A DNA stretch of 64,000 bases, from the sequence record NC_061418.1. One strand, 5' to 3'. Under the pieces are notes generated by a model. That model searched no databases and had not been told where the DNA came from. It saw only the letters and a program-made list of their open reading frames with translations. This document shows positions 30,283-52,200 of the stretch, piece after piece. The position numbers were made by a program, and so were the translations under genes. Numbering within the stretch: position 1 is the stretch's first letter; the number at the start of each line of letters is the position of its first letter.

Positions 30283-30903
30283 TTACAGTTTCTCACCTAA
30301 CGGACTGAAGGGGTCAATGCCTTCATCAATCGCGTTATTGATCACGTCAAAGGTCGCGCAAAGTTCCATCTGCTGTTCCAACGTCAGATGTTCTTCACCT
30401 TCAACATCACAAGCGCCATAGGTGTATTCCACCCACCACTCCCCTTTACTGTTTTTCTCTGCAACTCCATTGCGAATCGCTTTCCAGTAAGGGTCGTTTT
30501 CCGGCGTAGTCTCAAACACAAAGGCGTCGCGTTTAGAACCCCAGCCGTGCGTACTCTGGCGATCCCAAAGTGAACGGGTTCTCGGACTACTGAGTAACCA
30601 ACGTCGCATCTTCAGCGGTGCACTGGCCACTTCCTCAGGACTGTCCAAGAACTGAATAATGTTATCACGATAGAGACCGCGTTTACTGCTGTTCAAACGC
30701 TTGAGCTGACTTCTGACTGTGTCATCATAAAGCGATGAAATCATTGTCTTCGCCGAGTTCAGCATTCCTTTCGCCCGGTCAGACAGATTGGAACTAAAAC
30801 GCTCCAGTCTATCGTAAGAGCGCTGAATGTCCTCACGATCGGGAAGACCGAAGGCCGCTGCCCTAAAAACAGACTCACCGCCATCGATAATTGCAATTTT
30901 CAA
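30283..30903 (-). CDS. Conserved nucleus-block protein (phiKZ gp59 position, possible import cofactor)
   Basis: TTG start overlapping the stop of the beta-prime gene; C-terminal GIDPFSP. Assignment by synteny only. Confidence 0.55.
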   Translation of the reverse strand: MKIAIIDGGESVFRAAAFGLPDREDIQRSYDRLERFSSNLSDRAKGMLNSAKTMISSLYDDTVRSQLKRLNSSKRGLYRDNIIQFLDSPEEVASAPLKMRRWLLSSPRTRSLWDRQSTHGWGSKRDAFVFETTPENDPYWKAIRNGVAEKNSKGEWWVEYTYGACDVEGEEHLTLEQQMELCATFDVINNAIDEGIDPFSPLGEKL

Positions 30904-32437: not shown

Positions 32438-34339
32438 TTAACGACCGCCGAAACCGTAAGAAGAACGGGCACGAGAACGGAAACCTGCACCGTCATAGCC
32501 GTTGGATTCGTAACGAGAGGTATAACCACGACGGCTGGTACGGCCATCCTGAGTAATACCATCAGCGGTAACCACCATGCCTGCTGCAGACAGTGCGCGG
32601 GTCAGGCCGAACAGCCAGTTGGCGTTCACTTCGATGACGTCTGCACGGTCGGTGATCTGATACTGACCGCCGGTGTAGTCTTCGATGATTTTTTCCATCT
32701 GGTCCATACGGACTTGCAGATCGATCGAATCGTCGTTCAGGCAACGATCGTAATCGGCAACCACCTGCGGAGATTTCAGACCGAAGTTGGTCAGAATTTC
32801 GTAGTAACCGATTTCACGCAGGTCACGTTTATGACCCTGTTCGTCGATCCAGGTGCCCAGCAGTTGCGGCATGTCGCGGATGATACCCACGTCGTACAGA
32901 TCTGAGGTGTTCATGATGGTAGAGAAACGATCGCCGGAGATGTTGTCGGCGGCTTCGATCAGCACGTCAACAGCTTCTTTACGGTTCGGGTTCGTTTCGT
33001 CGCACGCATCAACCAGCAGCTGCAGCAGCGGGGTGTTGATGGAAGAACGCGGGATCTGGATCTGAACGATCTGGCTGTTCTCACGAACAACGTTAGCCAC
33101 CAGGCCAGCCCATTCGTCGTCGTTCAGAACTTCCGGGAGTTTTTCAAACTCGCCTTTCAGTTCATAGGTCAGAGCTTCAGCGGTACGCAGCGCGCCTTTG
33201 GTGTTCAGCGGACGCAGACCCTGAATCAGAGCCGGTTCAGTCATCAGTGCAGATACCTGTGCCAGAGAGAACATCAGGTATTCAGGAATCGCCACGCATT
33301 TCAGATCGCTGATCACCAGAGCGATACCGTAGATACGGGTATCGAAGTCTTCCGCTTTCTTTTTGCGCAGTGCAAAGAAACTGTTGGACTGCTCTTCTTC
33401 GCCTTTGTAATACAGGTCGACGTGGGAGATCAGACCGGCCAGCTGAGTGGACTCACGCTCGGACAATACGTTAACAATACCGCCACGACGTTCGTCACGC
33501 GGCGCCACCATCAGATCAACAACGATATCGGCGCGATGCGGCATTTCGGTGATGTCGTCAGCAACGTCACCTTGATGGAACGCGATGTTCGCCAGCAGAT
33601 CGTTATTTTTCAGGTCCAGCGCCGCAATGCTGAACTCGTTAGTGGTCAGGATCGCGTTAACGGAATAGATGATCTGGTTGATCACGGCAGAAGCGATACG
33701 CTCCAGTTCTGCGTCGGTCGGTTTGTCCAGGAAGATCGGGGACGCCGCCAGATGCTGAACCTGGCCGGTGAATGCCGGGTTGGACAGGGCAATCAGATCG
33801 TCCAGGGACTCTTTATAGCCGATCGCTTCGTACTGGTCGTTAGCGGTGGTGGTGAAACGCACGGTGTGGTCACGACCAACCTGCACGGCCTGTTTCGGCA
33901 TCACGGTGTTACCCACGAAGATCACGGTAGACGCGAAGATCATGCCGTTGTCTTTCAGACGGGCAGCGATGACCGCAGCGTCCAGTTTCATTTGGGTATC
34001 TTTGCCTGTTGCCGGCGTTACCGTCCATTCCAGGACACCGTTCAGGCTGATCGCGGCGCTGTGCTGTTTCTGGATTTCTTTGGTCAGTTCGACGAATTTG
34101 GCTACGTCGCCTGCCGCAGAGTTCAGGGACAGTACTGGCGCATCTTTACGGAAGTTATAGGATGAAGTCACTTTTTTCTCCTGACGGGAATCATTTTCGT
34201 TGGAACGGGTGTAAAAGGAACGGCGGCGTGCAGAGGATTCTTCCTGGCGACCTTCGTCGCGAGAAGTTTCCTGCGCACCAGTTTCTACTGCTGCTTCTTC
34301 TGCTTTGTTTTTGTTGTGATCGTCATCACGTAAGGCCAT
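32438..34339 (-). CDS. chmA: Chimallin, phage nuclear shell protein
   Basis: 633 aa with very strong codon bias and disordered charged N-terminus; located between the gp52-like gene and the gp55-like RNAP gene, as in phiKZ and 201phi2-1. Confidence 0.85.
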   Translation of the reverse strand: MALRDDDHNKNKAEEAAVETGAQETSRDEGRQEESSARRRSFYTRSNENDSRQEKKVTSSYNFRKDAPVLSLNSAAGDVAKFVELTKEIQKQHSAAISLNGVLEWTVTPATGKDTQMKLDAAVIAARLKDNGMIFASTVIFVGNTVMPKQAVQVGRDHTVRFTTTANDQYEAIGYKESLDDLIALSNPAFTGQVQHLAASPIFLDKPTDAELERIASAVINQIIYSVNAILTTNEFSIAALDLKNNDLLANIAFHQGDVADDITEMPHRADIVVDLMVAPRDERRGGIVNVLSERESTQLAGLISHVDLYYKGEEEQSNSFFALRKKKAEDFDTRIYGIALVISDLKCVAIPEYLMFSLAQVSALMTEPALIQGLRPLNTKGALRTAEALTYELKGEFEKLPEVLNDDEWAGLVANVVRENSQIVQIQIPRSSINTPLLQLLVDACDETNPNRKEAVDVLIEAADNISGDRFSTIMNTSDLYDVGIIRDMPQLLGTWIDEQGHKRDLREIGYYEILTNFGLKSPQVVADYDRCLNDDSIDLQVRMDQMEKIIEDYTGGQYQITDRADVIEVNANWLFGLTRALSAAGMVVTADGITQDGRTSRRGYTSRYESNGYDGAGFRSRARSSYGFGGR

Positions 34340-34623: not shown

Positions 34624-35718
34624 ATGATCTCAGCTTTCGAATTTCTAAACCGTCAATCCGTGAAGACGTTTTTTCCGGGACAACTCACCTTGCTGCGCAA
34701 CAATGCCGACATTAATTTAAAGAACATTAAACAACATTACCGTAATAGCATCCGTGCTGTTGAGAGTGATCATATACTGATTCAGATACTTCAACATTTA
34801 CCGTCACGGGTAGACATGAACGATGAACAGTATTATCGATTCTGCCACTCCGCCAGTAAACTGACACACAGGGCGTTGAACCTCAATACGGAAACCGTGC
34901 TTTCTGGTAAAGCCAGTAAACCATGGTTTTACGGTCAAGGTATGACCGAGTTCTACATCGTTGAGGAAAAAGATCTCCCTTATCGATTCGACGCAAAGAA
35001 CTACTGGCAAGAACTTATTCCAGTACGCCCAATTTCGCACAATCTGACAGGGCTTTCTTTTAACGCCCGTGACGGGCAGTACTTTAGTCACTATAAAGGA
35101 AACGCTTTCCTGTCTATCGACATCGGTCTTCTGGCAGTCCAGTATCGGCACTGGTCGCAGTTTAACGTCGGTACAGAAGCGAACCCGCATCCCGTTTCTA
35201 TCAACCAATTTGTTTATCAGTACCCTTTAGTCAACATGATCGAAGAGGACATGAATTTTTGTTTCTTCAATCGTCTTCGGTTGTCGACAGGGTATATCCC
35301 GGTTAACGATGACGCCGCACGACACGGCTTGGCAATCTACGATTTACGTCCACTGGTTGATAAAGTCTGGGAACAGTGGTTACAACGCGCCAGAAGCGCT
35401 CCGCGGCGCTTCATTGACCTTCCGGCACAAATCCCCGGGTTATTTACAGAAACACTTCTTGAAGCGATTACGATCCCGGATATCTTTTTCAACCGTCAGA
35501 ACCTCGGTCTTTACACATTGGCAAATTTACCGTACTTAAGTACCCTGTCCCGTCTTTCTGGTGAAACAGGGTCTAAAGACAACGGTAGTGTAAAAACTCA
35601 ACTGGAACGTTGGTACGCGCGTTTTGTTAACGGAGGTTACCTGACACCGATAACGGGGATTAATCCTCAAGATACTCTACAGGTTCTGTTGGACGAAGTG
35701 CTGATTCCACTTCGTTAA
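34624..35718 (+). CDS. Conserved protein (phiKZ gp52-like)
   Basis: 364 aa, divergent from chimallin and convergent with the DNA polymerase, matching the phiKZ arrangement. Confidence 0.65.
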   Translation: MISAFEFLNRQSVKTFFPGQLTLLRNNADINLKNIKQHYRNSIRAVESDHILIQILQHLPSRVDMNDEQYYRFCHSASKLTHRALNLNTETVLSGKASKPWFYGQGMTEFYIVEEKDLPYRFDAKNYWQELIPVRPISHNLTGLSFNARDGQYFSHYKGNAFLSIDIGLLAVQYRHWSQFNVGTEANPHPVSINQFVYQYPLVNMIEEDMNFCFFNRLRLSTGYIPVNDDAARHGLAIYDLRPLVDKVWEQWLQRARSAPRRFIDLPAQIPGLFTETLLEAITIPDIFFNRQNLGLYTLANLPYLSTLSRLSGETGSKDNGSVKTQLERWYARFVNGGYLTPITGINPQDTLQVLLDEVLIPLR

Positions 35719-37876
35719 AGTCAGAGAAAGCATCCTCACGAGAAATTTGATCAAAGACCAGTTTAGATTGGTCTTTATCAAAGAGGTAGTATTCCAGTGA
35801 CTCAAGAACCAGGTAGAAAGGTGACATGGCGCTGCCGATAATTTTACGAATGTTTGTCGCCTCAAGGATATCCTCTGGAATCCCGATTGACATGACAATA
35901 CTTTCTGGCAGCAGGATACGACCCAAATAAGTCTTATTCTTCGCTGCCAGGAATTGTCGCATTCGTTTCGCCATTTCCTGATCTTTCCAGTTCGCTAACC
36001 ATTTCTCCGTTTTGGTTTTCGTATCGTGGATAATACTGAACGACAACGCTGAGTATGGCGGCGGTTCAATAAGACCAAACTTCGGCGCAAAGACTTCTTG
36101 CCACAGTTCGTAGTTCAGATACGGCGTATTCTGTTCTTCGGTCTTCTTAGTGTACCCTTCCTCTTCTTTAACACGTGCCGCTTTAAGGTACGTGGTCTCC
36201 CCTTTACGAATCGATTCGTAGATCGTATACTCCCACCGGGCTACCCACCGTAAGTAACGGCTCAGTTCCAACATTTTCCCTTCCGTAACACTGTCGACAA
36301 TCTCTTCGATCATCAAATCAAGATCTTTACGTACTCCGGCTGGTGAGTTGGAAGCAATGAGCTCTACGCCTTTCTTCTCTCGGTCTTCGATATAGACCCC
36401 TTCTTGTACGCGTTTGTTTGCCGCATAGTGCTTAGCACGACTGGTCAACATGAACACCGGGAAAAGGAATTCGTTCTTCATTGCCAGACGGAAGACTTCT
36501 TTCTCGTCCTGAACACCCATGTTTACGGTCATGGTAGCAAGGTTATGCGTGGTCGTCTGCGAGACAAGGAACGCAATCCCTTCAGCTAGAATGATGTTTT
36601 CTTTCGTTAGCAAATCATTATCAGAGTACCAACGAATCCAATCCTGAACCGTAAAGATAGCGGAGTCGGTATCAGACCCTACACCACTGCGTCTAACGGC
36701 ATGGGGGAAGTCAGAAATCAGGAACGGGATGTTTCTTGACATCAGGAACGTATCGATGATTTCTTTATATTTGTCCAGCGTCTGGTAAATGAGTGCACAG
36801 GTGGAACCTAAACGCCAGTAATCGGCTTTAGCAATAACTTCTTCGTGGAACGGGTTTTTATCGCCAATGATTTCCGGGAACATAACCGTGATCTGTGCGA
36901 TGGTGTCTTCATCGACAAACTTCATCCATCCTTCGTAGTCAGGTACCGGCGTTTCTGCTGGAGTGACTAAACCACGAATCAGATCCCTTACAATCGCCTC
37001 GTTGAACTGACGAATATGATAAAGGTCGCCCATGTAAACGAACGCTGCTCGTTCGTAATCGCTACAGCCTTTCAGGAAACGTTTTAAATTGCGGTCTCCC
37101 CCTTCTGATCGCCAGTAGAGGTCAGACGAATACGACAGTACCGCTAACGTTTCTTCAACCGACGGGATATGCAGATTAAACTTCTTAACGGTATTTTCTA
37201 CTTTTGCCCAATCGGTCAGTTCAAGAATACTGGTCAAGTTAGCGTAGACAACATCAGGTCGCCAATAGTGGCGAGAGCCAGACAATAAACGGTCATTGTT
37301 GGAGTTGGCAATACCGTTGGCAATACGACAGCAACTTGTCAATACCGGGTGCGTTGAGCGGTCGTAAAGCGGTGAGTGCTCAGAACGGTGGTTACCGGAG
37401 ATGGCGTTGTTCAGAATCTTTTTGTTGTTCTGATTGTTGTTGTGGAAGGTTGCCTTAATAAAGTTACCGACTTTCTTCGCTTCAAACATTTCATGTTTTT
37501 CGGCGGAGCGCTTTTTCAAGTTACCTTTGATATATTCAGAGAGTAACGATAACTTTTGGTGCGGCGGTAACACGGTCGTGAACGTAGGTGCCATTAACCA
37601 TTCGTTATCGAGAATGTCTTTGAGGTACTGTGAGAAAGGTACCATAATCGGTTTTTGATCCAGATTCTCATCGCGTTCCAACATGCAAAAAACAGGATCG
37701 GTCACGCCGTTATCCGGGTTTTTCAGTTCCTCGACAACAAAGTCACGACATTCTTCGAAAGGTCTTCCAGTGCTGCGTTGTATGAATAAAGCAGTTTGAA
37801 TAATGTACGACTCGTGCACGCCAAGGTCTCGATGGTAATCCTTAGCGGTGCGCGTAAATGGGTTAGAAACTTTCAC
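35660..37876 (-). CDS. Divergent family-B DNA polymerase, polymerase-domain subunit (phiKZ gp50-like)
   Basis: Motif B-like KKILNNAISG and motif C-like GSDTDSAIF; no exonuclease motifs seen. Confidence 0.85.
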   Translation of the reverse strand: MKVSNPFTRTAKDYHRDLGVHESYIIQTALFIQRSTGRPFEECRDFVVEELKNPDNGVTDPVFCMLERDENLDQKPIMVPFSQYLKDILDNEWLMAPTFTTVLPPHQKLSLLSEYIKGNLKKRSAEKHEMFEAKKVGNFIKATFHNNNQNNKKILNNAISGNHRSEHSPLYDRSTHPVLTSCCRIANGIANSNNDRLLSGSRHYWRPDVVYANLTSILELTDWAKVENTVKKFNLHIPSVEETLAVLSYSSDLYWRSEGGDRNLKRFLKGCSDYERAAFVYMGDLYHIRQFNEAIVRDLIRGLVTPAETPVPDYEGWMKFVDEDTIAQITVMFPEIIGDKNPFHEEVIAKADYWRLGSTCALIYQTLDKYKEIIDTFLMSRNIPFLISDFPHAVRRSGVGSDTDSAIFTVQDWIRWYSDNDLLTKENIILAEGIAFLVSQTTTHNLATMTVNMGVQDEKEVFRLAMKNEFLFPVFMLTSRAKHYAANKRVQEGVYIEDREKKGVELIASNSPAGVRKDLDLMIEEIVDSVTEGKMLELSRYLRWVARWEYTIYESIRKGETTYLKAARVKEEEGYTKKTEEQNTPYLNYELWQEVFAPKFGLIEPPPYSALSFSIIHDTKTKTEKWLANWKDQEMAKRMRQFLAAKNKTYLGRILLPESIVMSIGIPEDILEATNIRKIIGSAMSPFYLVLESLEYYLFDKDQSKLVFDQISREDAFSDFNEVESALRPTEPVEYLED

Positions 37877-37988
37877 GCTATCGTCCTATGTAATCGGTCT
37901 TCTACAGGAATAGTACGGTCACTGAAAAAAGAAAAAAAGAAAAGATAACCTTCTCCTGTAACCTTTCGGTTACAGGAGAAGAGAATAG

Positions 37989-38411
37989 TTAACTGGTGAC
38001 GATGGTGAAATTGTTGAAGCCTGCGCTGTTAATCGCCAGCCGGATCTTTTCAATATCGCCTGTACCAATCCCGGGAATAGTGACAAGGGCATTCACTGTC
38101 TCAACAACGTTGATCGTATCAACTTTGATCCAGGGTAATCCGATGACGCGTTCTGTGCCGTCTTCTAAGGCCAATACCAACCAGTTGTAAGAACGGGCAT
38201 TGTCTTCAACGCTACCCGATGGCAGAAGAGGATAAACCTTCGCGTGCTCTGCTTCCGGGTCAATACCGAATTTAGTAGCACCTCTGGCCGACACAATGTC
38301 AGTCGGAACCACGTTACGGAAAACATCCCCGTAAAGCGCAGACGGATAAACCTGAAAGGTCACCGTGGAGTTCAGTGTAAATTTACCGAGGATGAGGTCT
38401 GTAGACGTCAT
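37989..38411 (-). CDS. Conserved SH3-like protein (phiKZ gp49 position)
   Basis: 140 aa beta-rich, IGLPWIK segment; directly upstream of the DNA polymerase. Confidence 0.6.
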   Translation of the reverse strand: MTSTDLILGKFTLNSTVTFQVYPSALYGDVFRNVVPTDIVSARGATKFGIDPEAEHAKVYPLLPSGSVEDNARSYNWLVLALEDGTERVIGLPWIKVDTINVVETVNALVTIPGIGTGDIEKIRLAINSAGFNNFTIVTS

Positions 38412-38771
38412 TTAATTTTCTCCCGATTCGAAAAGCAACATTAACGTAGTAGAGTCGAAGTACTCGAGGTCTACATAACGAAAGGTTGTTTTACTGGTGA
38501 TTTCTTCCACTCGTTCTTTCAAGGTTTCGTGGGTGAGAAAAAGATGACCAGCAATCTCACCGTGTTCAATAGAAGGAACAGTAGTTTTCAATCCGCTGTC
38601 AATGACTTCCAATACGAGCTTCCTGGTCGAGTCCTTTAGGTATTCGATGTCAATAACCGTATCATCATCTTCATCGCATTGGACTTCGTCTAAAAGACCC
38701 TGATAAAAATAACTAAAGATTAAAGGGAGTCGTACAAGGGAAGTAAGAACTTTTATTTTCATGTTCTTCAA
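38412..38771 (-). CDS. Small acidic protein, array member 10
   Basis: 119 aa; C-terminal hairpin FRYVDLEYFDSTTLMLLF. Confidence 0.65.
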   Translation of the reverse strand: MKNMKIKVLTSLVRLPLIFSYFYQGLLDEVQCDEDDDTVIDIEYLKDSTRKLVLEVIDSGLKTTVPSIEHGEIAGHLFLTHETLKERVEEITSKTTFRYVDLEYFDSTTLMLLFESGEN

Positions 38772-39141
38772 TCCTTAAACCAAGAGAATAACTTCCCGTG
38801 TACAGGAATAAGTTCTCAAGATGATAACGTTTCTCTAATAGGAAGGGATGGACTTTCTCCATCTCACGGTAAAGTCGAGTATGGAGACAATCGTAGTTTT
38901 CCAGAATGATTTCCATGCCGTACTCGAGTAAACCAGGATCACTCGCAATAAAGAATCCTTTTAAGACCTCGGGGTGCATCGCCATTTTTTCCGGTTCCAA
39001 AATATCTTCGACAAAAAGCGACGAAAGATCACGTGCTTTTATCCAGACATCTCTTGGCATATTATCTAGGAGCGTCGATAAACCAGAATAAAAAGACTGG
39101 CAGGGTAAAACAACCAACGTTGCATTTTTGTTTTTCACCAT
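38713..39141 (-). CDS. Small protein, array member 9
   Basis: 142 aa; N-terminal strand LVVLP; C-terminal YHLENLFLYTGSYSLGLRI. Confidence 0.65.
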   Translation of the reverse strand: MVKNKNATLVVLPCQSFYSGLSTLLDNMPRDVWIKARDLSSLFVEDILEPEKMAMHPEVLKGFFIASDPGLLEYGMEIILENYDCLHTRLYREMEKVHPFLLEKRYHLENLFLYTGSYSLGLRIEEHENKSSYFPCTTPFNL

Positions 39142-39599
39142 ACCTCCCGGCTAAGGTCCTCCACTACAAATGAGATTGCGTTGTTTCGTAAGAGTACGTC
39201 GCCGATATCGATATCTTCGTGATATCGGAGTTGACTCCTCTCGAAGGACAACAGTAAATCGGTCGCAATCACTTCAGCCATATCTTCAATGTAACAAAGC
39301 AACCGGTGTCGAGTACCCCTATCTAACCGTAACTGATCGCTGGGATCATCTGCATCAGGGACAAAGAAAAGATCAATCGTGTCATCGAGTCTTTCCGATG
39401 CCTCCTGCTGACCGAAGTGCTTAACGTCCAATACATAAGCGATGGTACAGCCGATAAAGTCAGTCACTTCAAAACGAATTTTGTTTCGGGGGATATAACG
39501 ATTAAACCCATCGATATATCGACTGAAGAAAAGGTGAAAGTTTGACGTTGGCCAATCCTTCACCGTAAAGATTAAGATAGTACGAAAGAAACGGGACAT
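39135..39599 (-). CDS. Small protein, array member 8
   Basis: 154 aa; ILIFTV ... IGDVLLRNNAISFVV. Confidence 0.7.
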   Translation of the reverse strand: MSRFFRTILIFTVKDWPTSNFHLFFSRYIDGFNRYIPRNKIRFEVTDFIGCTIAYVLDVKHFGQQEASERLDDTIDLFFVPDADDPSDQLRLDRGTRHRLLCYIEDMAEVIATDLLLSFERSQLRYHEDIDIGDVLLRNNAISFVVEDLSREVW

Positions 39600-40009
39600 T
39601 AAGATCCTCTGCGAACAGTCAGTTGGAAGGCGATGCCGTGGTGGCGTAATTCTACAAAATCAATACGGGGGGAACGTGAAAAGTTACTTCGTATCTCCCG
39701 TCGATAATCACGATAAAACGAGACGAAGAGTTCTTCTGCTGTCTCTATCAACTCTTGCGTCGTAACATCCGGCATCTTAGCGTGCGGATACGAACGTAAG
39801 AAATTCTCGATTTCAACTCTGATACGCCGCGTACCCGATAACGATAGATTTTCTTCGTCGGTGCCGATAATGAAGTCGAATATCATTTGCAGAACAAGTC
39901 GGCGATAGAGTAAATCGCAATACATCAGTTCGTGCAGTATGGCAGCGGTCTCTCTTCGATAAGGCAAAACAAAAAGACGTGTCGTAGTTTCAGTCACTGA
40001 CGGTAACAT
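39599..40009 (-). CDS. Small protein, array member 7
   Basis: 136 aa; LFVLP ... IDFVELRHHGIAFQL. Confidence 0.7.
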   Translation of the reverse strand: MLPSVTETTTRLFVLPYRRETAAILHELMYCDLLYRRLVLQMIFDFIIGTDEENLSLSGTRRIRVEIENFLRSYPHAKMPDVTTQELIETAEELFVSFYRDYRREIRSNFSRSPRIDFVELRHHGIAFQLTVRRGS

Positions 40010-40457
40010 AGAGGTCTCCTCTAACGAATCTTACGTTTCTGATTTGATCAGGACTCAAAACGATATCTTTCATGGCTAAAGTCTTCCTTGATATCTTCGA
40101 GCCTAATAATTGAATATCGATGTAGAAATTTCGCTTGAATTCTTCTTTGAGCTTCTCGTCCAGATGTTCCATTCCGTCGGAGCACAATAAGTTATCTAAG
40201 ACCTTTTCCGCTTCTTCGTTAGCCTTGAAAAAGAAGGGCATGAAGAAGGTTCTTTGGTAACGTGATAAAGAAAATAGAAAAGCCGGGAGAATAATCTCCC
40301 GGCTGTGTATTGAGTATAGGTTTTCTATTTTCTTTATTTCTGACGCGTCCCAATGCAGGTCATAGATGAAGGTTTGTGAATAATCTAATCGACCGTTGGT
40401 CACGTGAGATCTCCCATCCATAATAGTCAATGATACGTTCTTCGCTTGTTTTCTCAA
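39990..40457 (-). CDS. Small protein, array member 6
   Basis: 155 aa (start uncertain); FIYDL ... IRNVRFVRGDLYVTV. Confidence 0.65.
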   Translation of the reverse strand: MRKQAKNVSLTIMDGRSHVTNGRLDYSQTFIYDLHWDASEIKKIENLYSIHSREIILPAFLFSLSRYQRTFFMPFFFKANEEAEKVLDNLLCSDGMEHLDEKLKEEFKRNFYIDIQLLGSKISRKTLAMKDIVLSPDQIRNVRFVRGDLYVTVSD

Positions 40458-40782
40458 GAAACGTTTTGATTTCTTGTAGCGACAATTCCAGAAGTGCGTC
40501 AGTATCAGATAAATTTAGTTCAGGCGTAGAAAAAACGGAAAGTAACCGCTGTTCCATCGTAGAGTAACCATAAATCAGTTTCTCCAGACTAAAGAGCAAA
40601 AGTAAACCATACGCCTCGCCAAACGTCACCGGCTCTAAAGTGTCAGAGAAAAAGCAACGGTAGATCTTCTCGAGGCGAGGTCGTAATAACGCGATGTCAA
40701 TAATCTCTATTTTGTTCTTCACGTTTTTCTCGTTGTATCCTTTCCCAATCCCGAATTCGCCAATCGCCAAGGTTCTCGACAA
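40360..40782 (-). CDS. Small protein, array member 5
   Basis: 140 aa (start uncertain); IEIIDI ... YYGWEISRDQRSIRLF. Confidence 0.6.
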   Translation of the reverse strand: MSRTLAIGEFGIGKGYNEKNVKNKIEIIDIALLRPRLEKIYRCFFSDTLEPVTFGEAYGLLLLFSLEKLIYGYSTMEQRLLSVFSTPELNLSDTDALLELSLQEIKTFLEKTSEERIIDYYGWEISRDQRSIRLFTNLHL

Positions 40783-41224
40783 TCAATGCGTTGTTTCTGA
40801 CTTCGACCACCACAATTTCATCCCAGAACCTATTTTTTCGTATCCCCATGTCACGAAAATACTCTACCGCGAACACGATAAAGATATCGATAACTTCGCG
40901 GTAGAGTTCTTGGGACGGCTCATCCACGATCTCTTCGTTGTACGGATTAAAACCAATAGGCTCTAACGTGTAACCTTTAAACCAACCACGAATAGCAGCA
41001 TCGTCGTCCCAACATTCCCAAGGATATTTAGCGTCTTTATTGATGGCATTCCAAAAGAGACGGAGGGCGGTTTCCTTAAGATCTTCTACACGAAGGTTCT
41101 TGTCAGCGTACCGGTCGATAACACTGTGTTGGCGACGGACTGAATAGAGAATGGACGATAGTCGTCTGGCGAGATAATCAATATCAATAACATAACGCAT
41201 AATAGAGACCTTATCGATAAACAA
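40697..41224 (-). CDS. Small protein, array member 4
   Basis: 175 aa; RYVIDI ... IVVVEVRNNALIVE. Confidence 0.7.
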   Translation of the reverse strand: MFIDKVSIMRYVIDIDYLARRLSSILYSVRRQHSVIDRYADKNLRVEDLKETALRLFWNAINKDAKYPWECWDDDAAIRGWFKGYTLEPIGFNPYNEEIVDEPSQELYREVIDIFIVFAVEYFRDMGIRKNRFWDEIVVVEVRNNALIVENLGDWRIRDWERIQREKREEQNRDY

Positions 41225-41615
41225 GATAGGTACGTGAGTTCATCCGTTCCGTGTAACATTCACCGTAAATACCGTATCGATCCCATTGAGAACGAAGATC
41301 GCTAAGGATTTTTTCTAATACGCCTGTATTTTTCATTTTTTCAATTTCTTCCTGAAGAGACATGTAAAACGATAACTGGTCCCGATAATAAGGATCATCG
41401 GGAATCGTTTCAAAATCGCTTTCCAGCGGGTCAATGTTGTTCGAGTAATAAATCTCAATGAACAGTTTGTTATAATCTTTAGCTTTTCCTTTTTCCCAGT
41501 GGTACGCGGTAGAAAGGAAAGCGTCTATAATCTGATCCCGCCAGAGACCCTTATAGCCGTCGGTGAAGACCTTAAGCGCCGGGGGGATTTCGAAGAGATA
41601 TTTTTGCACTGCCAT
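41211..41615 (-). CDS. Small protein, array member 3
   Basis: 134 aa; KYLFEI ... CYTERMNSRTYLVY. Confidence 0.7.
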   Translation of the reverse strand: MAVQKYLFEIPPALKVFTDGYKGLWRDQIIDAFLSTAYHWEKGKAKDYNKLFIEIYYSNNIDPLESDFETIPDDPYYRDQLSFYMSLQEEIEKMKNTGVLEKILSDLRSQWDRYGIYGECYTERMNSRTYLVYR

Positions 41616-41929
41616 AAATCAGGATTCCTCTGACGAAACTCTTCATCATCTACCCAAACCATTAATGCGTTCCGTTGTATATCGAGCGATTCGATATGAA
41701 GCAGATTAACCGGAAGTTTCAATGGTACGCCACCGTACTCTTTTTCCAATACCCTGGCTACTTGCCATATCTTCTCTGTCTCCCAATGGTCATTATCAAT
41801 AATTAAATACTCAGGCGGAATCGTGTTATACGTCCGGTCTAACCAGTGGGCTAAAATCCTTAACCGATAGAACCGATCCATTGTCGGTGTCATATCGAGA
41901 AAATGCTTAATATCGATGACAATCAACAT
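41525..41929 (-). CDS. Small protein, array member 2
   Basis: Likely start MLIVIDIKH at 41929; ... HIESLDIQRNALMVWV. Confidence 0.65.
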   Translation of the reverse strand: MLIVIDIKHFLDMTPTMDRFYRLRILAHWLDRTYNTIPPEYLIIDNDHWETEKIWQVARVLEKEYGGVPLKLPVNLLHIESLDIQRNALMVWVDDEEFRQRNPDLWQCKNISSKSPRRLRSSPTAIRVSGGIRL

Positions 41930-42356
41930 GGTCTTCAGTTCCCAGTGTAATTTCAAAATGATTGTGTTGGAAAGAAAAGTCGAGGACACGATAATGACGC
42001 GGGACACCCTCCAATTGAAAGAGCGTAGTGAGTTCCTTTTCTTTTTCATTAACTCGATTGAAGATCGCTTCGATCATTGCGTTAAAATCACGTTTATCTC
42101 TACCCGGTAGCATTTTGCTGGGTTCTACCTTATCGGTTAACAAATAGATCCCTTGCGCCCAATGCTTTCTTTCCCGGAAATGAAACCACGTCATCCAGGT
42201 CGCGTAGAAAATTTCTTTCACGGTGAAAATACCGTGATAAGGTGAATTAATCCAGTAAAAGATCTTTGGGATCTCGCCTTTAACAATCATGACGTCACCA
42301 GACTTCCTGTAAGTCATTCTAAGCCTCTTTTTACTGTCAGTAGTACTATCTATCAA
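41907..42356 (-). CDS. Small protein, array member 1
   Basis: 149 aa (start uncertain); ... YRVLDFSFQHNHFEITL; first gene after the promoter motif at 42404. Confidence 0.65.
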   Translation of the reverse strand: MIDSTTDSKKRLRMTYRKSGDVMIVKGEIPKIFYWINSPYHGIFTVKEIFYATWMTWFHFRERKHWAQGIYLLTDKVEPSKMLPGRDKRDFNAMIEAIFNRVNEKEKELTTLFQLEGVPRHYRVLDFSFQHNHFEITLGTEDHVDCHRY

Positions 42357-42403
42357 ATAAATTGATAAACCCGTACAAAGCGATTACAACTATGTTCAAT
42401 AGG

Positions 42404-42411
42404 GTAATATA
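42404..42411 (-). promoter_or_regulatory. Putative early promoter motif TATATTAC
   Basis: Context ATATATTACCCTATTGAA at the head of the ten-gene array. Confidence 0.6.
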
Positions 42412-42521
42412 TGTCCTATTTCTTTTCCAACAAAACAAAATAAAAAAGACGGAGCGGGAAAACCCCGCTCCGTTGATGATCTTAAATGATTGAAGCAGAT
42501 AAAAGTCCTACATACTAACGA

Positions 42522-43490
42522 CTAGAGTTCCATCCCGTCGCCCTGAACATCGCCACGGATAAAGTTCTGCGCAGCCTTGGACTTCTTATCGCGTGCAGCG
42601 CGACGTTGTTCGTAGTCGTCAAACGTTTGGCGAAGTTCCATTAAGATCTCATTCAGTCCATCTGTATGAATGACAAAATAAAGCGAATCTTCCCCTGTAC
42701 GTTTACGGGTACCGAACGTGTTATAGTCCGCTGGGATAGTACCGGCTACCGGCTTGTTGTCGCCGTAGAGTTCCGCAACTGAAATAGGTGCGTTAACGCT
42801 CACTGCATCATCACGGTCCTGGAAGACGTCAAGGAGACCGAGCTCCGGGCTTACGCCTGCACCAAGAACGGGTTTCGCCCAGGTCAGTACGTCCGCAGAA
42901 TCCAGTCCATGATGTTTCCCGGAATAAAGATCCAGAACGGCGCGGATGGTAGCGATCATGATCGCATCGACTTCGGCGTTGCGCAGGTTGTTCTCATTGC
43001 TCTCGTAACAGACGTTACAGAACTGATTGTTCTTGATCGCAATGTTACGCAGCGACGAAATAGTCTTCATGGTGTTTTCGGTGGTATTACCCGATTCTGT
43101 CGAACCGACTAAAAAGACCAGCACCGCTTTATTCTGCGCATAAAGCGCTTCGATCAGTTTCGGACCAATGACCGAACCGCTGCCGCCGGAGGCGGAGAAG
43201 ATCAGAATGTTGAGATCGGACGGCTTCAACTTAAAGAGAATGTCGCTGATGCTTCGGTTCGTGACGTCGTAGTTGGTTTTACGGATTTTCCCTGCGCCGT
43301 CTACGCCCTCGAGGAAATACCATTTGTCAGGGTCTTGAACAGACCGCTCGGAAACGTTGGAACGACTACCGTCAACATACGCTTCTTTGACGTTAGCAAG
43401 TTCAGAAAGATCGGTGCGCATGAGTTTAGTGAGGATGTCGATACCCGCACCACCTGCGCCGTAAATAGTTACTGTGTTATTCGATGACAT
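42522..43490 (-). CDS. phuZ: Phage tubulin PhuZ
   Basis: IYGAGGAGIDI, GAGK.R, tubulin signature ASGGSGS.IGP, charged C-terminal tail. Confidence 0.92.
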   Translation of the reverse strand: MSSNNTVTIYGAGGAGIDILTKLMRTDLSELANVKEAYVDGSRSNVSERSVQDPDKWYFLEGVDGAGKIRKTNYDVTNRSISDILFKLKPSDLNILIFSASGGSGSVIGPKLIEALYAQNKAVLVFLVGSTESGNTTENTMKTISSLRNIAIKNNQFCNVCYESNENNLRNAEVDAIMIATIRAVLDLYSGKHHGLDSADVLTWAKPVLGAGVSPELGLLDVFQDRDDAVSVNAPISVAELYGDNKPVAGTIPADYNTFGTRKRTGEDSLYFVIHTDGLNEILMELRQTFDDYEQRRAARDKKSKAAQNFIRGDVQGDGMEL

Positions 43491-45283: not shown

Positions 45284-45745
45284 TCAGTTTGTTTCTAATC
45301 TTTTAAACACAGCCGTATTTCTAACGCTATTAAAATATTGGAGCAACTGCGTCTTATCGGTAACAACAATGTTATACTTGTCTAAAATTTCCTGGAATAA
45401 AGCAGATAAGTTACCCAACTCATCAATGATTGGGATTTCGTTTAAGAGCCACCACCATCGCCCTTTGATCCGGGTGATTGCAGGCTGCCCCCAGACTAAC
45501 CCTTTCATCTCGAAATGATAATGCGAAGAAAGGTTCTCTTCTACCTGATTTAACAGGCTTCTAATCGGACCAGCTTCTTTACTCTTCCTGAGAATACGGT
45601 AAACAACGAGTGTTCCGTCAATGGCAACTACCACGCTATGTCGAATTGTCTTCGAGGAAAGCGAAAGGGTTAAAAGACAATCCGTGTCGTTCATTAAAGT
45701 GAGATCAAGAAGATGGCCATCGGTAAAACGAACTGTAGTACTCAT
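45284..45745 (-). CDS. Hypothetical protein
   Basis: 153-aa ORF, RBS GGAGG. Confidence 0.7.
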   Translation of the reverse strand: MSTTVRFTDGHLLDLTLMNDTDCLLTLSLSSKTIRHSVVVAIDGTLVVYRILRKSKEAGPIRSLLNQVEENLSSHYHFEMKGLVWGQPAITRIKGRWWWLLNEIPIIDELGNLSALFQEILDKYNIVVTDKTQLLQYFNSVRNTAVFKRLETN

Positions 45746-45775
45746 TCAACGCCTCCCGTGGCCAGTGTGTATTTA

Positions 45776-46462
45776 TTAGAGTAAATTCCAACGTTTTTCC
45801 ATTAATTCGCTAATGCGATCTTTGATTCGCGGACTGGCGATCCATGGCGGGTTGATCAGTTCAGAAATGACAATCCCGAGATCAGGGAGTTTTTTCAACA
45901 GCGCCGTAATCTGTCCGGTAGTGAATCCCTCTGGTGGTGTATTGATGTCGAGTTTACAATAGCGGCCAAAGTCATTCTCTTCTTTATCGAAGTACCAGTC
46001 CAGTTCCCCAATTATCCCGTTACCCAGATCAATCAGTGAGCGTCTTTTTTGGTAAAGACGTTCGCCGAACGGTAATGCCATTTCATACTCTTCTGGTGTA
46101 ATGACCTTTTCAAGTTCAATGCACCGAGATGTCTGAGTTTTAGCATCGTAAGGTAAACGATACTTCGTCGCCGCTTCATAAACCACTTGACCAGCAACGT
46201 CTTTGCTTTCGGAGAAAACTTCAGTTCGTCTAACCCGAACGGTAATGCGGGTATTGTTTGTTGTTAACGCATTCGTTTCTGATTGCGTTATTTGGTAATA
46301 GTCGCCTGTACTTTCTTTTAGTCTTCGGAAACTCGCCTCATCGACCTTAAAGAAAATGGCTACTTCATTTTCGTTACTCTTTTTATTACCCATGAAGAAG
46401 CTCGTTATTCTGTAGTTAATTTGGACGGTAGGGAACCACTGGTCATTTCGCCTACCTTGCAT
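45776..46462 (-). CDS. CYTH / triphosphate-tunnel-fold protein
   Basis: ENEV, VRVRR, YEAATKY, IELEK.I, KRR and ELDWY in canonical CYTH order. Confidence 0.65.
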   Translation of the reverse strand: MQGRRNDQWFPTVQINYRITSFFMGNKKSNENEVAIFFKVDEASFRRLKESTGDYYQITQSETNALTTNNTRITVRVRRTEVFSESKDVAGQVVYEAATKYRLPYDAKTQTSRCIELEKVITPEEYEMALPFGERLYQKRRSLIDLGNGIIGELDWYFDKEENDFGRYCKLDINTPPEGFTTGQITALLKKLPDLGIVISELINPPWIASPRIKDRISELMEKRWNLL

Positions 46463-46566
46463 AAGTAACGTCCGAAGGCCAAAAAAGAAACAGAAAAAAT
46501 AAAAAAAGAAGGTGTGAAAACACCTTCTTTCGTGACAGATGCACTATAAATAGCAAGAGGAATAAA

Positions 46567-47121
46567 TTATGAAAACCCGGCCAAAAGACGTTGGAAAGAA
46601 TTCAACTCTTTAATGTATTTAGCGAGCACCGCAGCCTTCAGTTGGATATCTAATCCAGGCGGGAGTTGTTCCTTCAGCCTGATCTGTCCGAACTGACTTT
46701 CGAACGTTGCGTAGAGAAAAACTTTACCAAGCTCTAACCGTAACCCTGCGTTGATCGCTCTTAACGGTAACGGATGTTTCTCGGTGAGAATGTCCCACTG
46801 CTCGGTGAACCCGCGAACGTTAAGGCAATACCCTCCTTCTGACGCGAGACGATTGATGTCGTCACCGGTCATGGAAAGATAGAGGTCTGCTATGTCAACC
46901 CCCAACTGGGTAACTGGGAATCGTTTGTTCGGTTCTTTCAGCGCGTATTTAAGTACCAGCGTACTGTAGTGTTCTTTGACGATGTTCTGAATATCAGTTT
47001 TCGCCTCTTTCGTTTTAAACGACGTCACTAACGAGCCGTAGTGTCGTAATTCATGGATGACGTTCCCTTGTGTCACGTAACTCTTCGCTCTAATTTTGCC
47101 CAGATCAAAATTATAGTACAT
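46567..47121 (-). CDS. Hypothetical protein
   Basis: 184-aa ORF, RBS AAGGAG. Confidence 0.7.
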   Translation of the reverse strand: MYYNFDLGKIRAKSYVTQGNVIHELRHYGSLVTSFKTKEAKTDIQNIVKEHYSTLVLKYALKEPNKRFPVTQLGVDIADLYLSMTGDDINRLASEGGYCLNVRGFTEQWDILTEKHPLPLRAINAGLRLELGKVFLYATFESQFGQIRLKEQLPPGLDIQLKAAVLAKYIKELNSFQRLLAGFS

Positions 47122-47155
47122 TACTCGCTCCTTATTTACTGGCGTGGCGGTACGG

Positions 47156-47608
47156 TTATTGACCAGCGATTAACGCGTTCTCTAACACCAAACGAAGAAT
47201 CTTATCGTTCAGGTCGTCACGGTTAGTGGGCGAAGTAATCCGCTTTTTACGCAGTCCTTCTGCGACCGTTCCCGTATTGAACTCGAGTGTAAGGTAGCCC
47301 ACGTCTTCTTTCTTGTCTTCCAGCCAACGATATTCATACTCGAATTTTCTGTCATCATACGCGACAGGGTGGCGAGAAACAATACGGTAGGTGCGGCACA
47401 TCACTTTATTTTGAAGATCACTGTAGAGCTTGTAGATCTCCATTTTAGTGACTTGACCTTTGACTTCCCGGTAATTCTCTGCCGAGAGTTCCGCGATCAG
47501 TTTACCGTCCTTTGCCAAGAGCAGGTTTCCGTGATGGATAGTCGCAACCATCCCGTCTTCACGGCGCTCTTGTAGACCGGCGCAGCCTGTTAGTTCAAAT
47601 GTAATCAC
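47156..47608 (-). CDS. Hypothetical protein
   Basis: 150-aa ORF. Confidence 0.65.
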   Translation of the reverse strand: MITFELTGCAGLQERREDGMVATIHHGNLLLAKDGKLIAELSAENYREVKGQVTKMEIYKLYSDLQNKVMCRTYRIVSRHPVAYDDRKFEYEYRWLEDKKEDVGYLTLEFNTGTVAEGLRKKRITSPTNRDDLNDKILRLVLENALIAGQ

Positions 47609-48113
47609 TGAGTAATCCTTTAAAAAGTTTGAAAGCTTCTGGTTGGTAACCGATTTGTTCTGGGGCTTCCGAAGGACTGAGAAGGTAAAACCGATTCTCC
47701 TCGTCTTCTTGCCAAAGGAAATGATCCCGATAATCTAATAACCCATCAGGGTATAAAAGATCGTAATAATAATCCCCTACTTTCAATAACGAATGACCAA
47801 AACAAAAATCAGTCGGCGTATTGTCGTCGTAAGAAATCTCTTGGTAATAAAATAAAAATTCTTCCGGGTGATCGGTACACAGTTCTTTACCTAAATCACT
47901 GATGGCTAAGCAACACCCTGAATAGACTTCGCCAGGGCCTTGATCCGCTGAACCGTATAACCAGATATCAAAATCATCGCCTGGAACAAAACCGATTTCT
48001 TTCGCCCGCACTATCCCCCAGTCCCAACAATGTTGACCGAGATTTAGGTTGTTAGTCAGAAAGAACTCCTTGTAGACTTTCCTCAACAAATGCAGGTATT
48101 CACTTGTCGTCAT
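47595..48113 (-). CDS. Putative Cys-His-Asp fold protein, distant relative of 12585-13265
   Basis: Likely start MTTSEY at 48113; GQHCWDW...GHSLLKVGDYYYDLLYPDG. Confidence 0.5.
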   Translation of the reverse strand: MTTSEYLHLLRKVYKEFFLTNNLNLGQHCWDWGIVRAKEIGFVPGDDFDIWLYGSADQGPGEVYSGCCLAISDLGKELCTDHPEEFLFYYQEISYDDNTPTDFCFGHSLLKVGDYYYDLLYPDGLLDYRDHFLWQEDEENRFYLLSPSEAPEQIGYQPEAFKLFKGLLSDYI

Positions 48114-48114
48114 C

Positions 48115-48459
48115 TTATTCGATCCTGTCGGTGTAATTTCCGTACCACCATCCATCCGGCGCCAACGTGACAACGATCCGACTTCCGCCTTCCAATGGAA
48201 TCCATTCCTTATCAAAAACGTATTTAACAGGCCATGATGTCTCGTTGGCACGGACGCGTCTTCCCACGTTACTCTCTAAAGGAAGAAACCGGAATCGAAA
48301 CATTTCTTTATTTTCCAGGGTTCCAATTTCTACCTTGACGTCAGGTATTCGACAACTTCTACGAACCGCCCGGGAAAAGGTAGCGATGATTCTTTTTTCA
48401 TTGCGATAAAATTTAACACAAGGTGTAGTTTTAATTATACTCATAGGCAATTTCATCAA
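48115..48459 (-). CDS. Hypothetical basic protein
   Basis: 114-aa ORF. Confidence 0.55.
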   Translation of the reverse strand: MMKLPMSIIKTTPCVKFYRNEKRIIATFSRAVRRSCRIPDVKVEIGTLENKEMFRFRFLPLESNVGRRVRANETSWPVKYVFDKEWIPLEGGSRIVVTLAPDGWWYGNYTDRIE

Positions 48460-48524
48460 AAAAACCCTCTTAACGATTATAGAACCTCTAGAGACGGAAA
48501 CGTCTCTAGAGGGGAGTATTTTAT

Positions 48525-49205
48525 TCAGCGAGGTGAATGGTTATCTGCAAGGGCTATAGGTAACTGGTTCTGAAACGCGTAAAGCGTGACTTCCTGTTTA
48601 TACGCCTTGCGGTGATTTGAAACGACGGAGTTGACGTATTGCTTGAATCCGGCAACTGTGCGGGGTTTACCTTTATCAGTGTAGAAGTACGCGCGATTAC
48701 CTGCTGCGCCTCCTGCCACCCTTACCGCTAACCGATCATTTCGTGCCTTCAATATTTTCACTGCACCGCCGGGTCCTAACAGATGGGCCATGTAGATTTC
48801 ATTGATCCCGACCTGACGCTGGAGTGAACGCTCTAAAAACTCTTTGTTCTCCTTCATGTACGCTACCGCCATAAGCGTGTTCGCACGTGAGTTTTTTACA
48901 CTGGTTCCGGGTTTGACCCCGTACTGTTTACCGTACTTCTTTACCGTGGCTCGCCACGTTCGATCTGTAAAACCAAATAGTCCTTTTGCTGAAGAGTGTT
49001 TATTGTGCATACCGGCGCCCATCGTACTTTCAATGGAAGCCATGGTAACCAAGTCAATCATTTTAACGTCGGTTTTTTGAGATACTCGATATAAGGTATC
49101 GCTATGCTTTGCAAAGCCTACGCTATTAGTCGAGACAGATGCGGTTGCTGGGGTAGCAATAATGCTTACCAGGCAAAGGACAAGCGCCCAGAAATAGTTT
49201 GGCAT
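48525..49205 (-). CDS. Lytic transglycosylase (SLT, phiKZ gp144-like catalytic domain) with signal peptide
   Basis: N-terminal signal peptide; catalytic ASIES, SAKGLFGF...TW, YMAHLLGPGGA. Confidence 0.85.
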   Translation of the reverse strand: MPNYFWALVLCLVSIIATPATASVSTNSVGFAKHSDTLYRVSQKTDVKMIDLVTMASIESTMGAGMHNKHSSAKGLFGFTDRTWRATVKKYGKQYGVKPGTSVKNSRANTLMAVAYMKENKEFLERSLQRQVGINEIYMAHLLGPGGAVKILKARNDRLAVRVAGGAAGNRAYFYTDKGKPRTVAGFKQYVNSVVSNHRKAYKQEVTLYAFQNQLPIALADNHSPR

Positions 49206-49301
49206 TTCTCATATTTCCTATTCAAATCAAAAGAAAGCCAAGGTAACCCTTGGTTACGTATCTCAACGTAACCGGGCATACCCTGACTATAGAAAGGCGA
49301 A

Positions 49302-49949
49302 CTATTGTACCGAAATCACCCGCTCTTTCATCAAAGGGAAATCAAGATTCGTCCGGAAATCGACAATCTCGTGATCAAAGAAGCTGATATAGACGCGTTC
49401 ACGGTCAACCAGATTACCAATAACAAAACGCGTAGTACCGAGTCGGATATGTTCCGCGACGACACTGAATGCGTACAGCAGCTCACCCGGATTAAACGGT
49501 ATACTGTTCCCCTCGACGTTATCGACAGGCAATGACAATACTTCTGCCGCCACGAAGATGTGTGTTGTTCCTCGATGCCACCATGCGTATTTGTGCACGC
49601 CTTCTTTCACCTTCAACATCACCGCAGGAATATCCGGGCGAGTGAGATCAAGAGCAATCTGCTGCACTGTTGGGAAAGTCGCACAGAGTTCAAAGAGTAC
49701 CCAGAAGAGATCTTTGTGATCCTCTCCTACCGCTGCATTCAGTTCCTCAATAGCGGTTGCGCTACCGTACTGACCGATAACACTACTGAAGACAACGGGT
49801 TCGTCCAATAACTTGCTCCCTGGGTGTGGCACGTTCTCGAAGTTTTGAGTTTCTTCCGCACTGATTGGAACGGTCAGGGTCAAAGTTTCCGTAGCGTTAT
49901 CCAACGTGAAGTTACCGGTCTGGAAGATTTTAAGTTCTGGTTTACTCAT
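49302..49949 (-). CDS. Hypothetical protein
   Basis: 215-aa ORF. Confidence 0.7.
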   Translation of the reverse strand: MSKPELKIFQTGNFTLDNATETLTLTVPISAEETQNFENVPHPGSKLLDEPVVFSSVIGQYGSATAIEELNAAVGEDHKDLFWVLFELCATFPTVQQIALDLTRPDIPAVMLKVKEGVHKYAWWHRGTTHIFVAAEVLSLPVDNVEGNSIPFNPGELLYAFSVVAEHIRLGTTRFVIGNLVDRERVYISFFDHEIVDFRTNLDFPLMKERVISVQ

Positions 49950-50148
49950 TTTCTTTTCCGTATTAAGGTTAGTCTAACAAATCAAGAGAAGGTAACGTGA
50001 CTTTGCAAATCGAAGTCAAGGTCAACTACTTAACCGTTATGACTTTTAGAGTCATAACTCTAAGGATGGACCTACGGTCTAATTAACGCACAGGCTTCGC
50101 CGTGCGAAGGTCAACAGATAAATATAAATAAATTTATTTTTCGATGAA

Positions 50149-50556: not shown

Positions 50557-50589
50557 GGTAATACTCCTCTAGTTAGTACATTCAATAAC

Positions 50590-50597
50590 GTGATATA
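50590..50597 (-). promoter_or_regulatory. Putative early promoter motif TATATCAC
   Basis: Context TATATCACGTTATTGAA. Confidence 0.55.
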
Positions 50598-50650
50598 GTT
50601 TTTAATTCAATTTGAAACAAAAAAAAAGAAAGGGGCGAACCCCTCTCTTT

Positions 50651-51371: not shown

Positions 51372-51439
51372 TTTGAATTCCTTATTGGTTTAGTTAGCAT
51401 AGTCCTTCGGTCAAACGACCGAAGGAAGTGTAAATAGGA

Positions 51440-51829: not shown

Positions 51830-51870
51830 TTTTGGATACTCCGGTAGAATTGTTGAGGTAAAAGAATGTC

Positions 51871-52191: not shown

Positions 52192-52200
52192 GTTTAACCT

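Follow-up and report, generated by a model that had tools for sequence, protein, structure and literature searches.

The window analysed here, a stretch of 64,000 nucleotides (nt) from sequence record NC_061418.1, belongs to the Klebsiella phage KpLz-2_45 (NC_061418, genus Siatvirus), a nucleus-forming jumbo phage; a position in the window equals the position in the record minus 186000. The part of the window used as query, 37900-42600, is 100% identical to that phage. Between the gene for the PhuZ tubulin and the gene for a divergent DNA polymerase, the minus strand carries a transcription unit of eleven tightly coupled genes (g01 to g11) that is bounded by two terminators. An initial annotation of this locus, made from the sequence alone, had described ten consecutive open reading frames (ORFs) of about 120-175 amino acids (aa) as extremely diverged paralogs of one fold, and had proposed that they serve nuclear import as cargo adaptors or are subunits of a hetero-oligomeric ring. 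The ORFs are indeed present on the minus strand, but the unit holds eleven genes. The likely starts of the array genes are internal ATG and GTG codons with Shine-Dalgarno ribosome-binding sites, so that the products of g01-g10 are 116-167 aa long. Two of the array genes can be connected to proteins of phage phiKZ: g04 through profile searches to gp43, and g09 through its predicted structure and gene position to the import factor Imp2 (gp47).

The eleven-gene unit

The unit follows the PhuZ tubulin gene (42522-43490 on the minus strand, annotated in RefSeq) and precedes the polymerase gene (35660-37876, minus strand). Read along the minus strand, it runs from an intrinsic terminator after phuZ (42473-42449; an 11-bp stem with 8 GC pairs, then a T-run) through the motif TATATTAC (42411-42404) and genes g01-g11 to a second terminator between g11 and the polymerase gene (37982-37949; 15-bp stem). 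Stops and starts of successive genes overlap or abut, with overlaps of 1-91 nt, plus one gap of 10 nt. The terminator after phuZ is annotated at the same place in the record of phage FBKp24.

The early promoter motif that had been placed at 42404 was recovered by a motif scan as TATATTAC, and the entry for FBKp24 has a promoter at that site. We take it to be an early promoter of the phiKZ type, recognised by the virion RNA polymerase. The motif occurs three times in the window versus 1.65 copies expected, which is no excess over shuffled sequence. At the promoter-like site itself, ATATAT(T/C)ACC is kept in four lineages, and phage Moabite retains the core TATTAC. After the promoter-like motif and before the ribosome-binding site of g01 comes a conserved leader block, AATCGMTTTGTACG followed by TTTATTTGA (42330-42400 on the minus strand; 10140-10180 in the locus L003). 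It is common to the four lineages, and its core TTGTACG is retained in Moabite too.

The first gene, g01 (41907-42317, minus strand as all that follow; 136 aa), starts at ATG 42317, which has a ribosome-binding site and is preferred over an earlier and unlikely TTG start at 42356. It is the ortholog of the gene at position 1 of the Moabite array (phmmer E 6e-9; hhalign 96.6%). The second gene, g02 (41525-41929, 134 aa), is a conserved ORF that RefSeq and GenBank do not annotate for KpLz-2_45, MJ359 or FBKp24 and that was not called as a gene on two Logan contigs either. Both the ORF and its protein are well conserved in the four lineages and match Moabite position 2 (hhalign 93%). It overlaps g03 (41211-41615, 134 aa) by 91 nt; the conserved part of g02 stops exactly at the ATG of g03, and the residues beyond it, encoded within the overlap, are unconserved. 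Gene callers probably dropped g02 because of this long overlap. A programmed frameshift joining g02 to g03 was rejected, because there is no slippery heptamer, g03 has a ribosome-binding site and an ATG of its own, and the tail of g02 is unconserved.

The fourth gene, g04 (40697-41200, 167 aa), is a core gene of the chimalliviruses. For g05 (40360-40722, 120 aa, GTG start), HMM (hidden Markov model) and hhalign searches found no relative beyond the four closest lineages, apart from a collinear match of low rank. The next gene, g06 (39990-40403, 137 aa), starts at GTG 40403 as in RefSeq, with ATG 40421 as an alternative, and matches Moabite position 6 and PhiEaH1 gp029 weakly and collinearly. 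Its coding sequence contains a terminator-like hairpin (40281-40304, minus strand; stem CCGGGAGA/TCTCCCGG, U-rich tail, about -20 kcal/mol), at which place the FBKp24 record annotates a terminator. Stem and U-rich tail are conserved in 4/4 lineages, and nearly all synonymous sites of the hairpin region are invariant, despite proteins that are only about 55% identical. The hairpin may be an attenuator or a processing site within the operon.

The array continues with g07 (39599-40009, 136 aa), g08 (39135-39599, 154 aa), g09 (38713-39141, 142 aa) and g10 (38412-38762, 116 aa). Searches of g01-g10 against Pfam, PHROGs, NCBIfam, PADLOC and the PDB sequences gave nothing above noise. The eleventh gene, g11 (37989-38411, 140 aa), differs from these ten in that it encodes a protein of an already described domain family, Pfam PF20287 (SH3DP, SH3 fold domain associated with phage DNA polymerases). 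It is a full-length member (E 2.6e-37; 127.6 bits versus a gathering cut-off of 25) and the ortholog of phiKZ gp49, and it stands outside the set of proteins for which a shared fold is considered and just beyond the coordinates given in the initial annotation.

Conservation and divergence across nucleus-forming phages

Homologs of PhuZ were found in 161 phage records (tblastn). The order PhuZ gene, 7-14 small genes, SH3DP gene and polymerase gene is present in 59 loci that have the two anchor genes, set 2.8-9 kb apart, and the same arrangement is seen in FBKp24, Moabite, Totoro, PhiEaH1, PCH45, SPLA10, Ea35-70 and phiKZ. Only two genes of the unit belong to wide sequence families, namely g11 (82 loci) and g04 (65-68 loci). 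An iterative HMM search with g04 reached 68 loci, among them the N-terminal half of phiKZ gp43, and hhalign linked g04 to cluster C2 with 97.5%. Judged by these profiles, g04 is the counterpart of the N-terminal domain of phiKZ gp43, and in sequence and structure it is a member of the family of phiKZ gp43, PhiPA3 gp039 and Goslar A0A482GE47. With its 167 aa, g04 consists of one domain only; extra C-terminal parts are present in phiKZ gp43 (357 aa) and in the proteins of the Erwinia Ea35-70 group (429 aa). Inspected by eye, phiKZ gp43 (L006, 12342-13415) closes its C-terminal half with a hairpin-plus-GDY segment like the one at the end of its N-terminal, g04-like domain; the whole protein may be that domain duplicated internally in tandem.

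Family searches found the remaining genes in the nearest lineages only, namely in FBKp24 and on two contigs from Logan (L091 and L092). Beyond these, best or near-best matches are to the gene that holds the corresponding position in Moabite, Totoro, PhiEaH1, PCH45 or SPLA10. For positions 1, 2, 4 and 11 the hhalign probability is 93-100%. At positions 8, 9 and 10 the top match is the Moabite gene at the same position (47%, 18% and 14%, respectively), the alignments being full-length and collinear for positions 8 and 9 and covering the first 50 residues only for position 10; positions 5 and 6 gave collinear matches of low rank. Downstream of the g04 ortholog there are seven genes in KpLz-2_45, Moabite, Totoro, PhiEaH1, PCH45 and phiKZ alike. 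To extend the g09 family, a set of 5.8 billion proteins was searched twice and 1.84 billion representatives once with HMMER, followed by local iteration, and this yielded new lineages as well as the orthologs in PCH45 and SPLA10, but did not extend as far as gp47. A scan of metagenome contigs with the polymerase returned one useless fragment.

This collinear, one-to-one positional orthology with distant chimalliviruses implies that the array is old and did not expand in this phage, so that the "expanded repertoire" initially proposed is a misleading description of an ancient collinear set. The array genes themselves diverge extremely fast.

According to one alternative, the ten genes encode unrelated small early proteins (e.g. 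for host takeover or anti-defence) with a generic small alpha/beta layout, the operon being an early-expression slot. Extreme divergence combined with early expression is typical of genes engaged in an arms race with the host. The one-to-one positions across very distant phages with different hosts, in turn, speak against host-specific weapons. The array genes had no PADLOC matches either, although that library models defence systems and not counter-defence proteins.

Tandem duplication does occur in the PhuZ-to-polymerase interval, as paralogs in another clade show. The family C0 comprises 97 proteins in 42 loci of uncultivated chimalliviruses, each locus carrying two to four of them in tandem immediately upstream of its SH3DP gene. 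The HMMs of the separate C0 positions cross-match down to E 1e-22, and hhalign between positions gives 97.7-98.7% over the full length. The C0 copies sit where phiKZ has Imp2 and Imp4 and where KpLz-2_45 has g08-g10, and the presence of paralogs detectable from sequence at these very positions is not what a row of unrelated proteins would lead one to expect. Two such loci are L016 (7934-9118) and L065 (7890-9071); by eye, the three C0 copies of L016 have a common C-terminal LGL-x3-G-x3-Y motif.

An all-against-all hhalign comparison of 96 groups (4560 pairs), and then of four-lineage profiles (990 pairs), recovered same-position links only. One off-position signal alone recurs, and it is borderline: g07 is connected both with the g04 family and with position 8 (phmmer E 0.05-0.08; hhalign 44% and 27%, respectively). 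Pairs of array families gave hhalign scores a little above those of pairs made up of an array and a control family (Mann-Whitney p 2e-5), but we give this difference little weight because unrecognised distant orthologs and the non-independence of the pairs confound it.

Predicted structures of g04 and g09

AlphaFold2 models were made for g04 and g09, from alignments of 35 and 8 sequences, respectively. The g04 model (predicted local distance difference test, pLDDT, 87.5; predicted template modelling score, pTM, 0.78) has a strand at residues 2-6, helices including a long one at 94-118, a hairpin at 127-135/138-146 and a closing helix at 147-165. The g09 model (pLDDT 80.8, pTM 0.76) has a strand at 7-13, helices, a hairpin at 107-114/119-125 and a tail that is disordered. 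Both models thus present their elements in the same order: an N-terminal strand, helices, a long helix and a C-terminal hairpin. This is the layout that the initial annotation had read into all ten proteins, and every peptide string that it quoted does occur in the translations. The models bear the layout out for g04 and g09; for the other eight genes it is a reading of the sequences by eye.

In a Foldseek comparison with the PDB, the g04 model had no counterpart (best E 0.66, template modelling (TM) scores mostly below 0.3). Its confident matches in BFVD are its own orthologs, with TM-scores up to 0.95. The BFVD matches of g09 are nearly all small uncharacterised jumbo-phage proteins, many of them from known nucleus-forming phages. 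The matched accessions could be mapped to genes for PhiEaH1 and for phiKZ/SL2, but not for the Ea35-70 accessions W6ATG4 and W6AT02 or the UPI identifiers. The three PhiEaH1 proteins matched by g09 are all encoded in the array, although the array makes up only about 10 of the 241 annotated features of that phage. PhiEaH1 gp027, which occupies the position of g09, is matched with a TM-score of 0.64/0.68 (E 1.4e-4), and gp028 and gp029, at other positions, with 0.46 and 0.36, respectively.

Among the matches of g09 is also the SL2 protein A0A2D1GRC6, which belongs to the 90% cluster of PHIKZ047, i.e. of Imp2 (E 1.6e-3, probability 1.00, TMq 0.50, TMt 0.42). PhiPA3 gp044, named as the Imp2 homolog in the preprint on phiKZ import, is matched more weakly (E 0.087). 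Further matches are distant sequence relatives of g04 in PS119XW, Goslar and Psa21, and PhiPA3 gp039 (TMq 0.39-0.44). Since the g04 model itself reaches a TMq of 0.38-0.47 on these four targets, g09 resembles them about as well as g04 does. The concentration of the g09 matches in array genes of the PhuZ-to-polymerase interval and the agreement of the two models in the order of their elements both speak against ten unrelated proteins. A shared fold is thereby supported for g04 and g09 on the basis of their models, and it is plausible for the other eight array genes.

The BFVD model of g09 itself (UPI001F140FF9, 91% identical in the alignment) superposes poorly on the AlphaFold2 model, with a TM-score of 0.34 and a root-mean-square deviation of 17.9. 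The BFVD models of such orphan proteins must for this reason be considered unreliable; the TM-scores given above are therefore probably underestimates, and a low TM-score is no proof of different folds.

Two side observations were made. Upstream of phuZ, at 45284-52878 on the minus strand, lies a second run of about 14 small genes, several of which also pass a crude test for an N-terminal strand and a C-terminal hairpin. The 90% clusters of PHIKZ043-PHIKZ048 contain many short proteins labelled "partial [Klebsiella pneumoniae]" (MFO57..., WP_4101...; contigs of 235-745 bp), which suggests, from these entries, that reads of phiKZ-like phages contaminate some K. pneumoniae assemblies.

The array and nuclear import

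The initial annotation had stated that phiKZ gp47 and gp48, encoded in the same interval, were genetically implicated in nuclear import, and this was borne out. In phiKZ, orf47 is imp2, which is needed for import of the UvsX-like protein Nlp1 (gp152) and whose product is itself imported via Imp1; orf48 is imp4, which is needed for import of TopA (10.1101/2024.03.27.586873). Both lie between the genes for PhuZ and the polymerase. The defects of imp2 and imp4 mutants are specific to certain cargoes and not general, and Imp2 accumulates in the nucleus rather than being bound to the shell (10.1101/2024.03.27.586873). By sequence search, Imp2, Imp4 and Imp5 were reported to be confined to the phiKZ-like phages of Pseudomonas (10.1101/2024.03.27.586873). 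A later preprint terms Imp2 and Imp4 cargo-specific adaptors, and neither of the two genes carried a disruptive insertion in transposon sequencing (PMC12676376).

Counted upstream from the SH3DP gene, the second place is held by g09 here, by gp027 in PhiEaH1 and by gp47 in phiKZ, and the first place by g10 here and by gp48 in phiKZ. Taken together with the Foldseek matches to the PHIKZ047 cluster and, more weakly, to PhiPA3 gp044, this makes g09 the counterpart of Imp2 in predicted structure and gene position. The two proteins differ in length (142 aa for g09 versus 178 aa for gp47) and have no detectable sequence homology. The correspondence of g10 to Imp4, which is of similar size (116 versus 127 aa), is inferred from gene position only.

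Other components of the import system are encoded in the same window. A homolog of phiKZ gp69 (Imp1/PicA) lies at 22992-24515 on the minus strand (phmmer E 4e-33), followed by homologs of the nvRNAP (non-virion RNA polymerase) protein gp68 (24544-26085, E 3e-35), of Imp6/ChmC (26180-26998, phmmer E 1e-10) and of Imp3 (30283-30903, phmmer E 3e-15); the annotation lists each of the four as a hypothetical protein. A further gene at 32438-34339 has a homolog in related contigs that Pfam classifies as Chimallin_Phikzvirus. A homolog of UvsX/Nlp1, the type of cargo served by Imp2, is present in the near-identical relatives KpSz_1 and KpXa_1 (E 4e-77). The link of the array to import is thus real but indirect. 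The Avs5 activator JADA, which was considered as another link, is unrelated, being phiKZ gp124.

These observations suggest the following explanation. The unit would be an ancient early operon, kept between phuZ and the polymerase gene across nucleus-forming jumbo phages, in which a promoter of the virion-polymerase type, eleven translationally coupled genes and a terminator follow each other. Its ten fast-evolving small proteins (116-167 aa) would have arisen by old tandem duplications of one chimallivirus-specific domain, in which a helical bundle lies between an N-terminal beta-strand and a C-terminal beta-hairpin. Each protein would act as the adaptor for one class of nuclear cargo, that of g09 being the UvsX-like recombinase, would present this cargo at a dedicated surface of the importer Imp1/PicA, encoded 14 kb away, and would itself enter the phage nucleus along with the cargo. 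We regard this explanation, taken as a whole, as a tentative one whose chances come close to even without quite reaching it.

A considerable number of results weigh against it. As the initial annotation had stated, pairwise identity between the array proteins is not obvious: in mutual comparisons of g01-g10, BLASTP gave nothing significant (best E 0.39), hhalign stayed at or below 2.4% with thin profiles and at or below 6.4% with four-lineage profiles, and phmmer found nothing significant between array positions. The deep families of uncultivated chimalliviruses have no hhalign links among themselves either. The comparison with phiKZ proteins that had been recommended at the profile level connects g04 to gp43 but leaves the two import factors unlinked: a profile of 19 sequences of the g09 family reaches gp47 with E 4.8 (hmmsearch) and 1.1% (hhalign), comparisons of group against group likewise did not join g09 to gp47, and the g10 group shows no hhalign link to the family of gp48. 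The single fold initially claimed for the whole array accordingly has the agreement of the g04 and g09 models on its side, but neither a sequence nor a profile link; TM-scores across families are mostly 0.36-0.50, i.e. in the twilight zone and below the 0.5 that had been set as the line for one fold. Among the best 50 BFVD matches of the g04 model there is no Imp2 and no identifiable array protein of FBKp24. The Foldseek match between g09 and gp47 is not specific to Imp2, as other array families score similarly, and could reflect a common fold rather than specific orthology of the modelled proteins. A Chou-Fasman test for the layout did not separate the array from controls, 8 of 31 of which pass; the same detector missed the hairpin of g09. 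The models cover two of the ten array genes, that of g09 being built from an alignment of 8 sequences only, and the array proteins of the Klebsiella phage are known here from their sequences and from models alone. Finally, the rapid divergence in an early operon also fits proteins for host takeover or anti-defence.

Several of these points, namely the lack of sequence or profile similarity between positions, the controls that pass the layout test and the low TM-scores across families, are what one would expect of ten unrelated early proteins. We nevertheless consider that alternative improbable, in view of the positional orthology, the tandem paralogs and the structural matches described above.

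It is also conceivable that the proteins do share a fold, but act as accessory factors of replication or recombination that work with the polymerase and the SH3DP protein in the nucleus, being cargo or cofactors themselves, with the imp2 and imp4 phenotypes as special cases. In line with this, the array always lies directly upstream of the gene for SH3DP, a polymerase-associated Pfam family, and of the polymerase gene itself; Imp2 accumulates in the nucleus and serves a recombinase; and g04 is a core gene in 65-68 loci. A terminator, however, divides the array from the polymerase gene, the sole genetic data on array genes concern import, and neither the family-library searches nor those of the PDB detected a nucleic-acid-binding or enzymatic family. 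We consider this account improbable, too. The ring that had been proposed as a second possibility, i.e. a single hetero-oligomeric ring or pore formed by the ten proteins at the shell of the nucleus, would agree with a shared fold and with the equimolar co-expression favoured by translational coupling through overlapping stops and starts, but seems highly improbable given that phages differ in how many genes the interval holds (about 7 to 14), that the imp2 and imp4 mutants of phiKZ have cargo-specific and not general defects, and that Imp2 is imported rather than shell-bound.

The adaptor explanation can be extended from this phage to the family. The whole phuZ-to-polymerase operon of the Chimalliviridae would then encode one ancient superfamily of import adaptors, to which Imp2 and Imp4 belong, each member licensing its own cargo at its own surface of Imp1/PicA. 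In this sweeping form we consider the proposal doubtful. Neither a fold superfamily for the operon nor Imp2 counterparts outside the phages of Pseudomonas are described in the literature searched, in which the import study figures as a preprint. The array genes had been deposited as hypothetical proteins and their phiKZ counterparts have been characterised in part. New are the counterpart of Imp2, by structure and position, in an enterobacterial phage, the prospect of an operon-wide superfamily of adaptors and the missing annotation of g02, a conserved gene of the operon that is absent from every public record of this phage group among those examined.

The question at stake is how the phage nucleus selects its cargo. 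Cargoes of the UvsX type occur across nucleus-forming phages, well beyond the Pseudomonas phages to which Imp2, Imp4 and Imp5 appeared limited. If g09 is a true counterpart of Imp2 and its neighbours share its fold, candidate adaptors would be found at a fixed genomic address in every nucleus-forming phage. This would explain how a fast-evolving import specificity exists alongside a conserved Imp1, and would make direct and cheap experiments possible in tractable phage systems (phiKZ in PAO1, Goslar in E. coli, RAY). If the superfamily exists, the nucleus-forming phages would possess a family-wide repertoire of transport receptors, like the karyopherins of eukaryotes, and Imp2 and Imp4 would not be inventions of the Pseudomonas phages.

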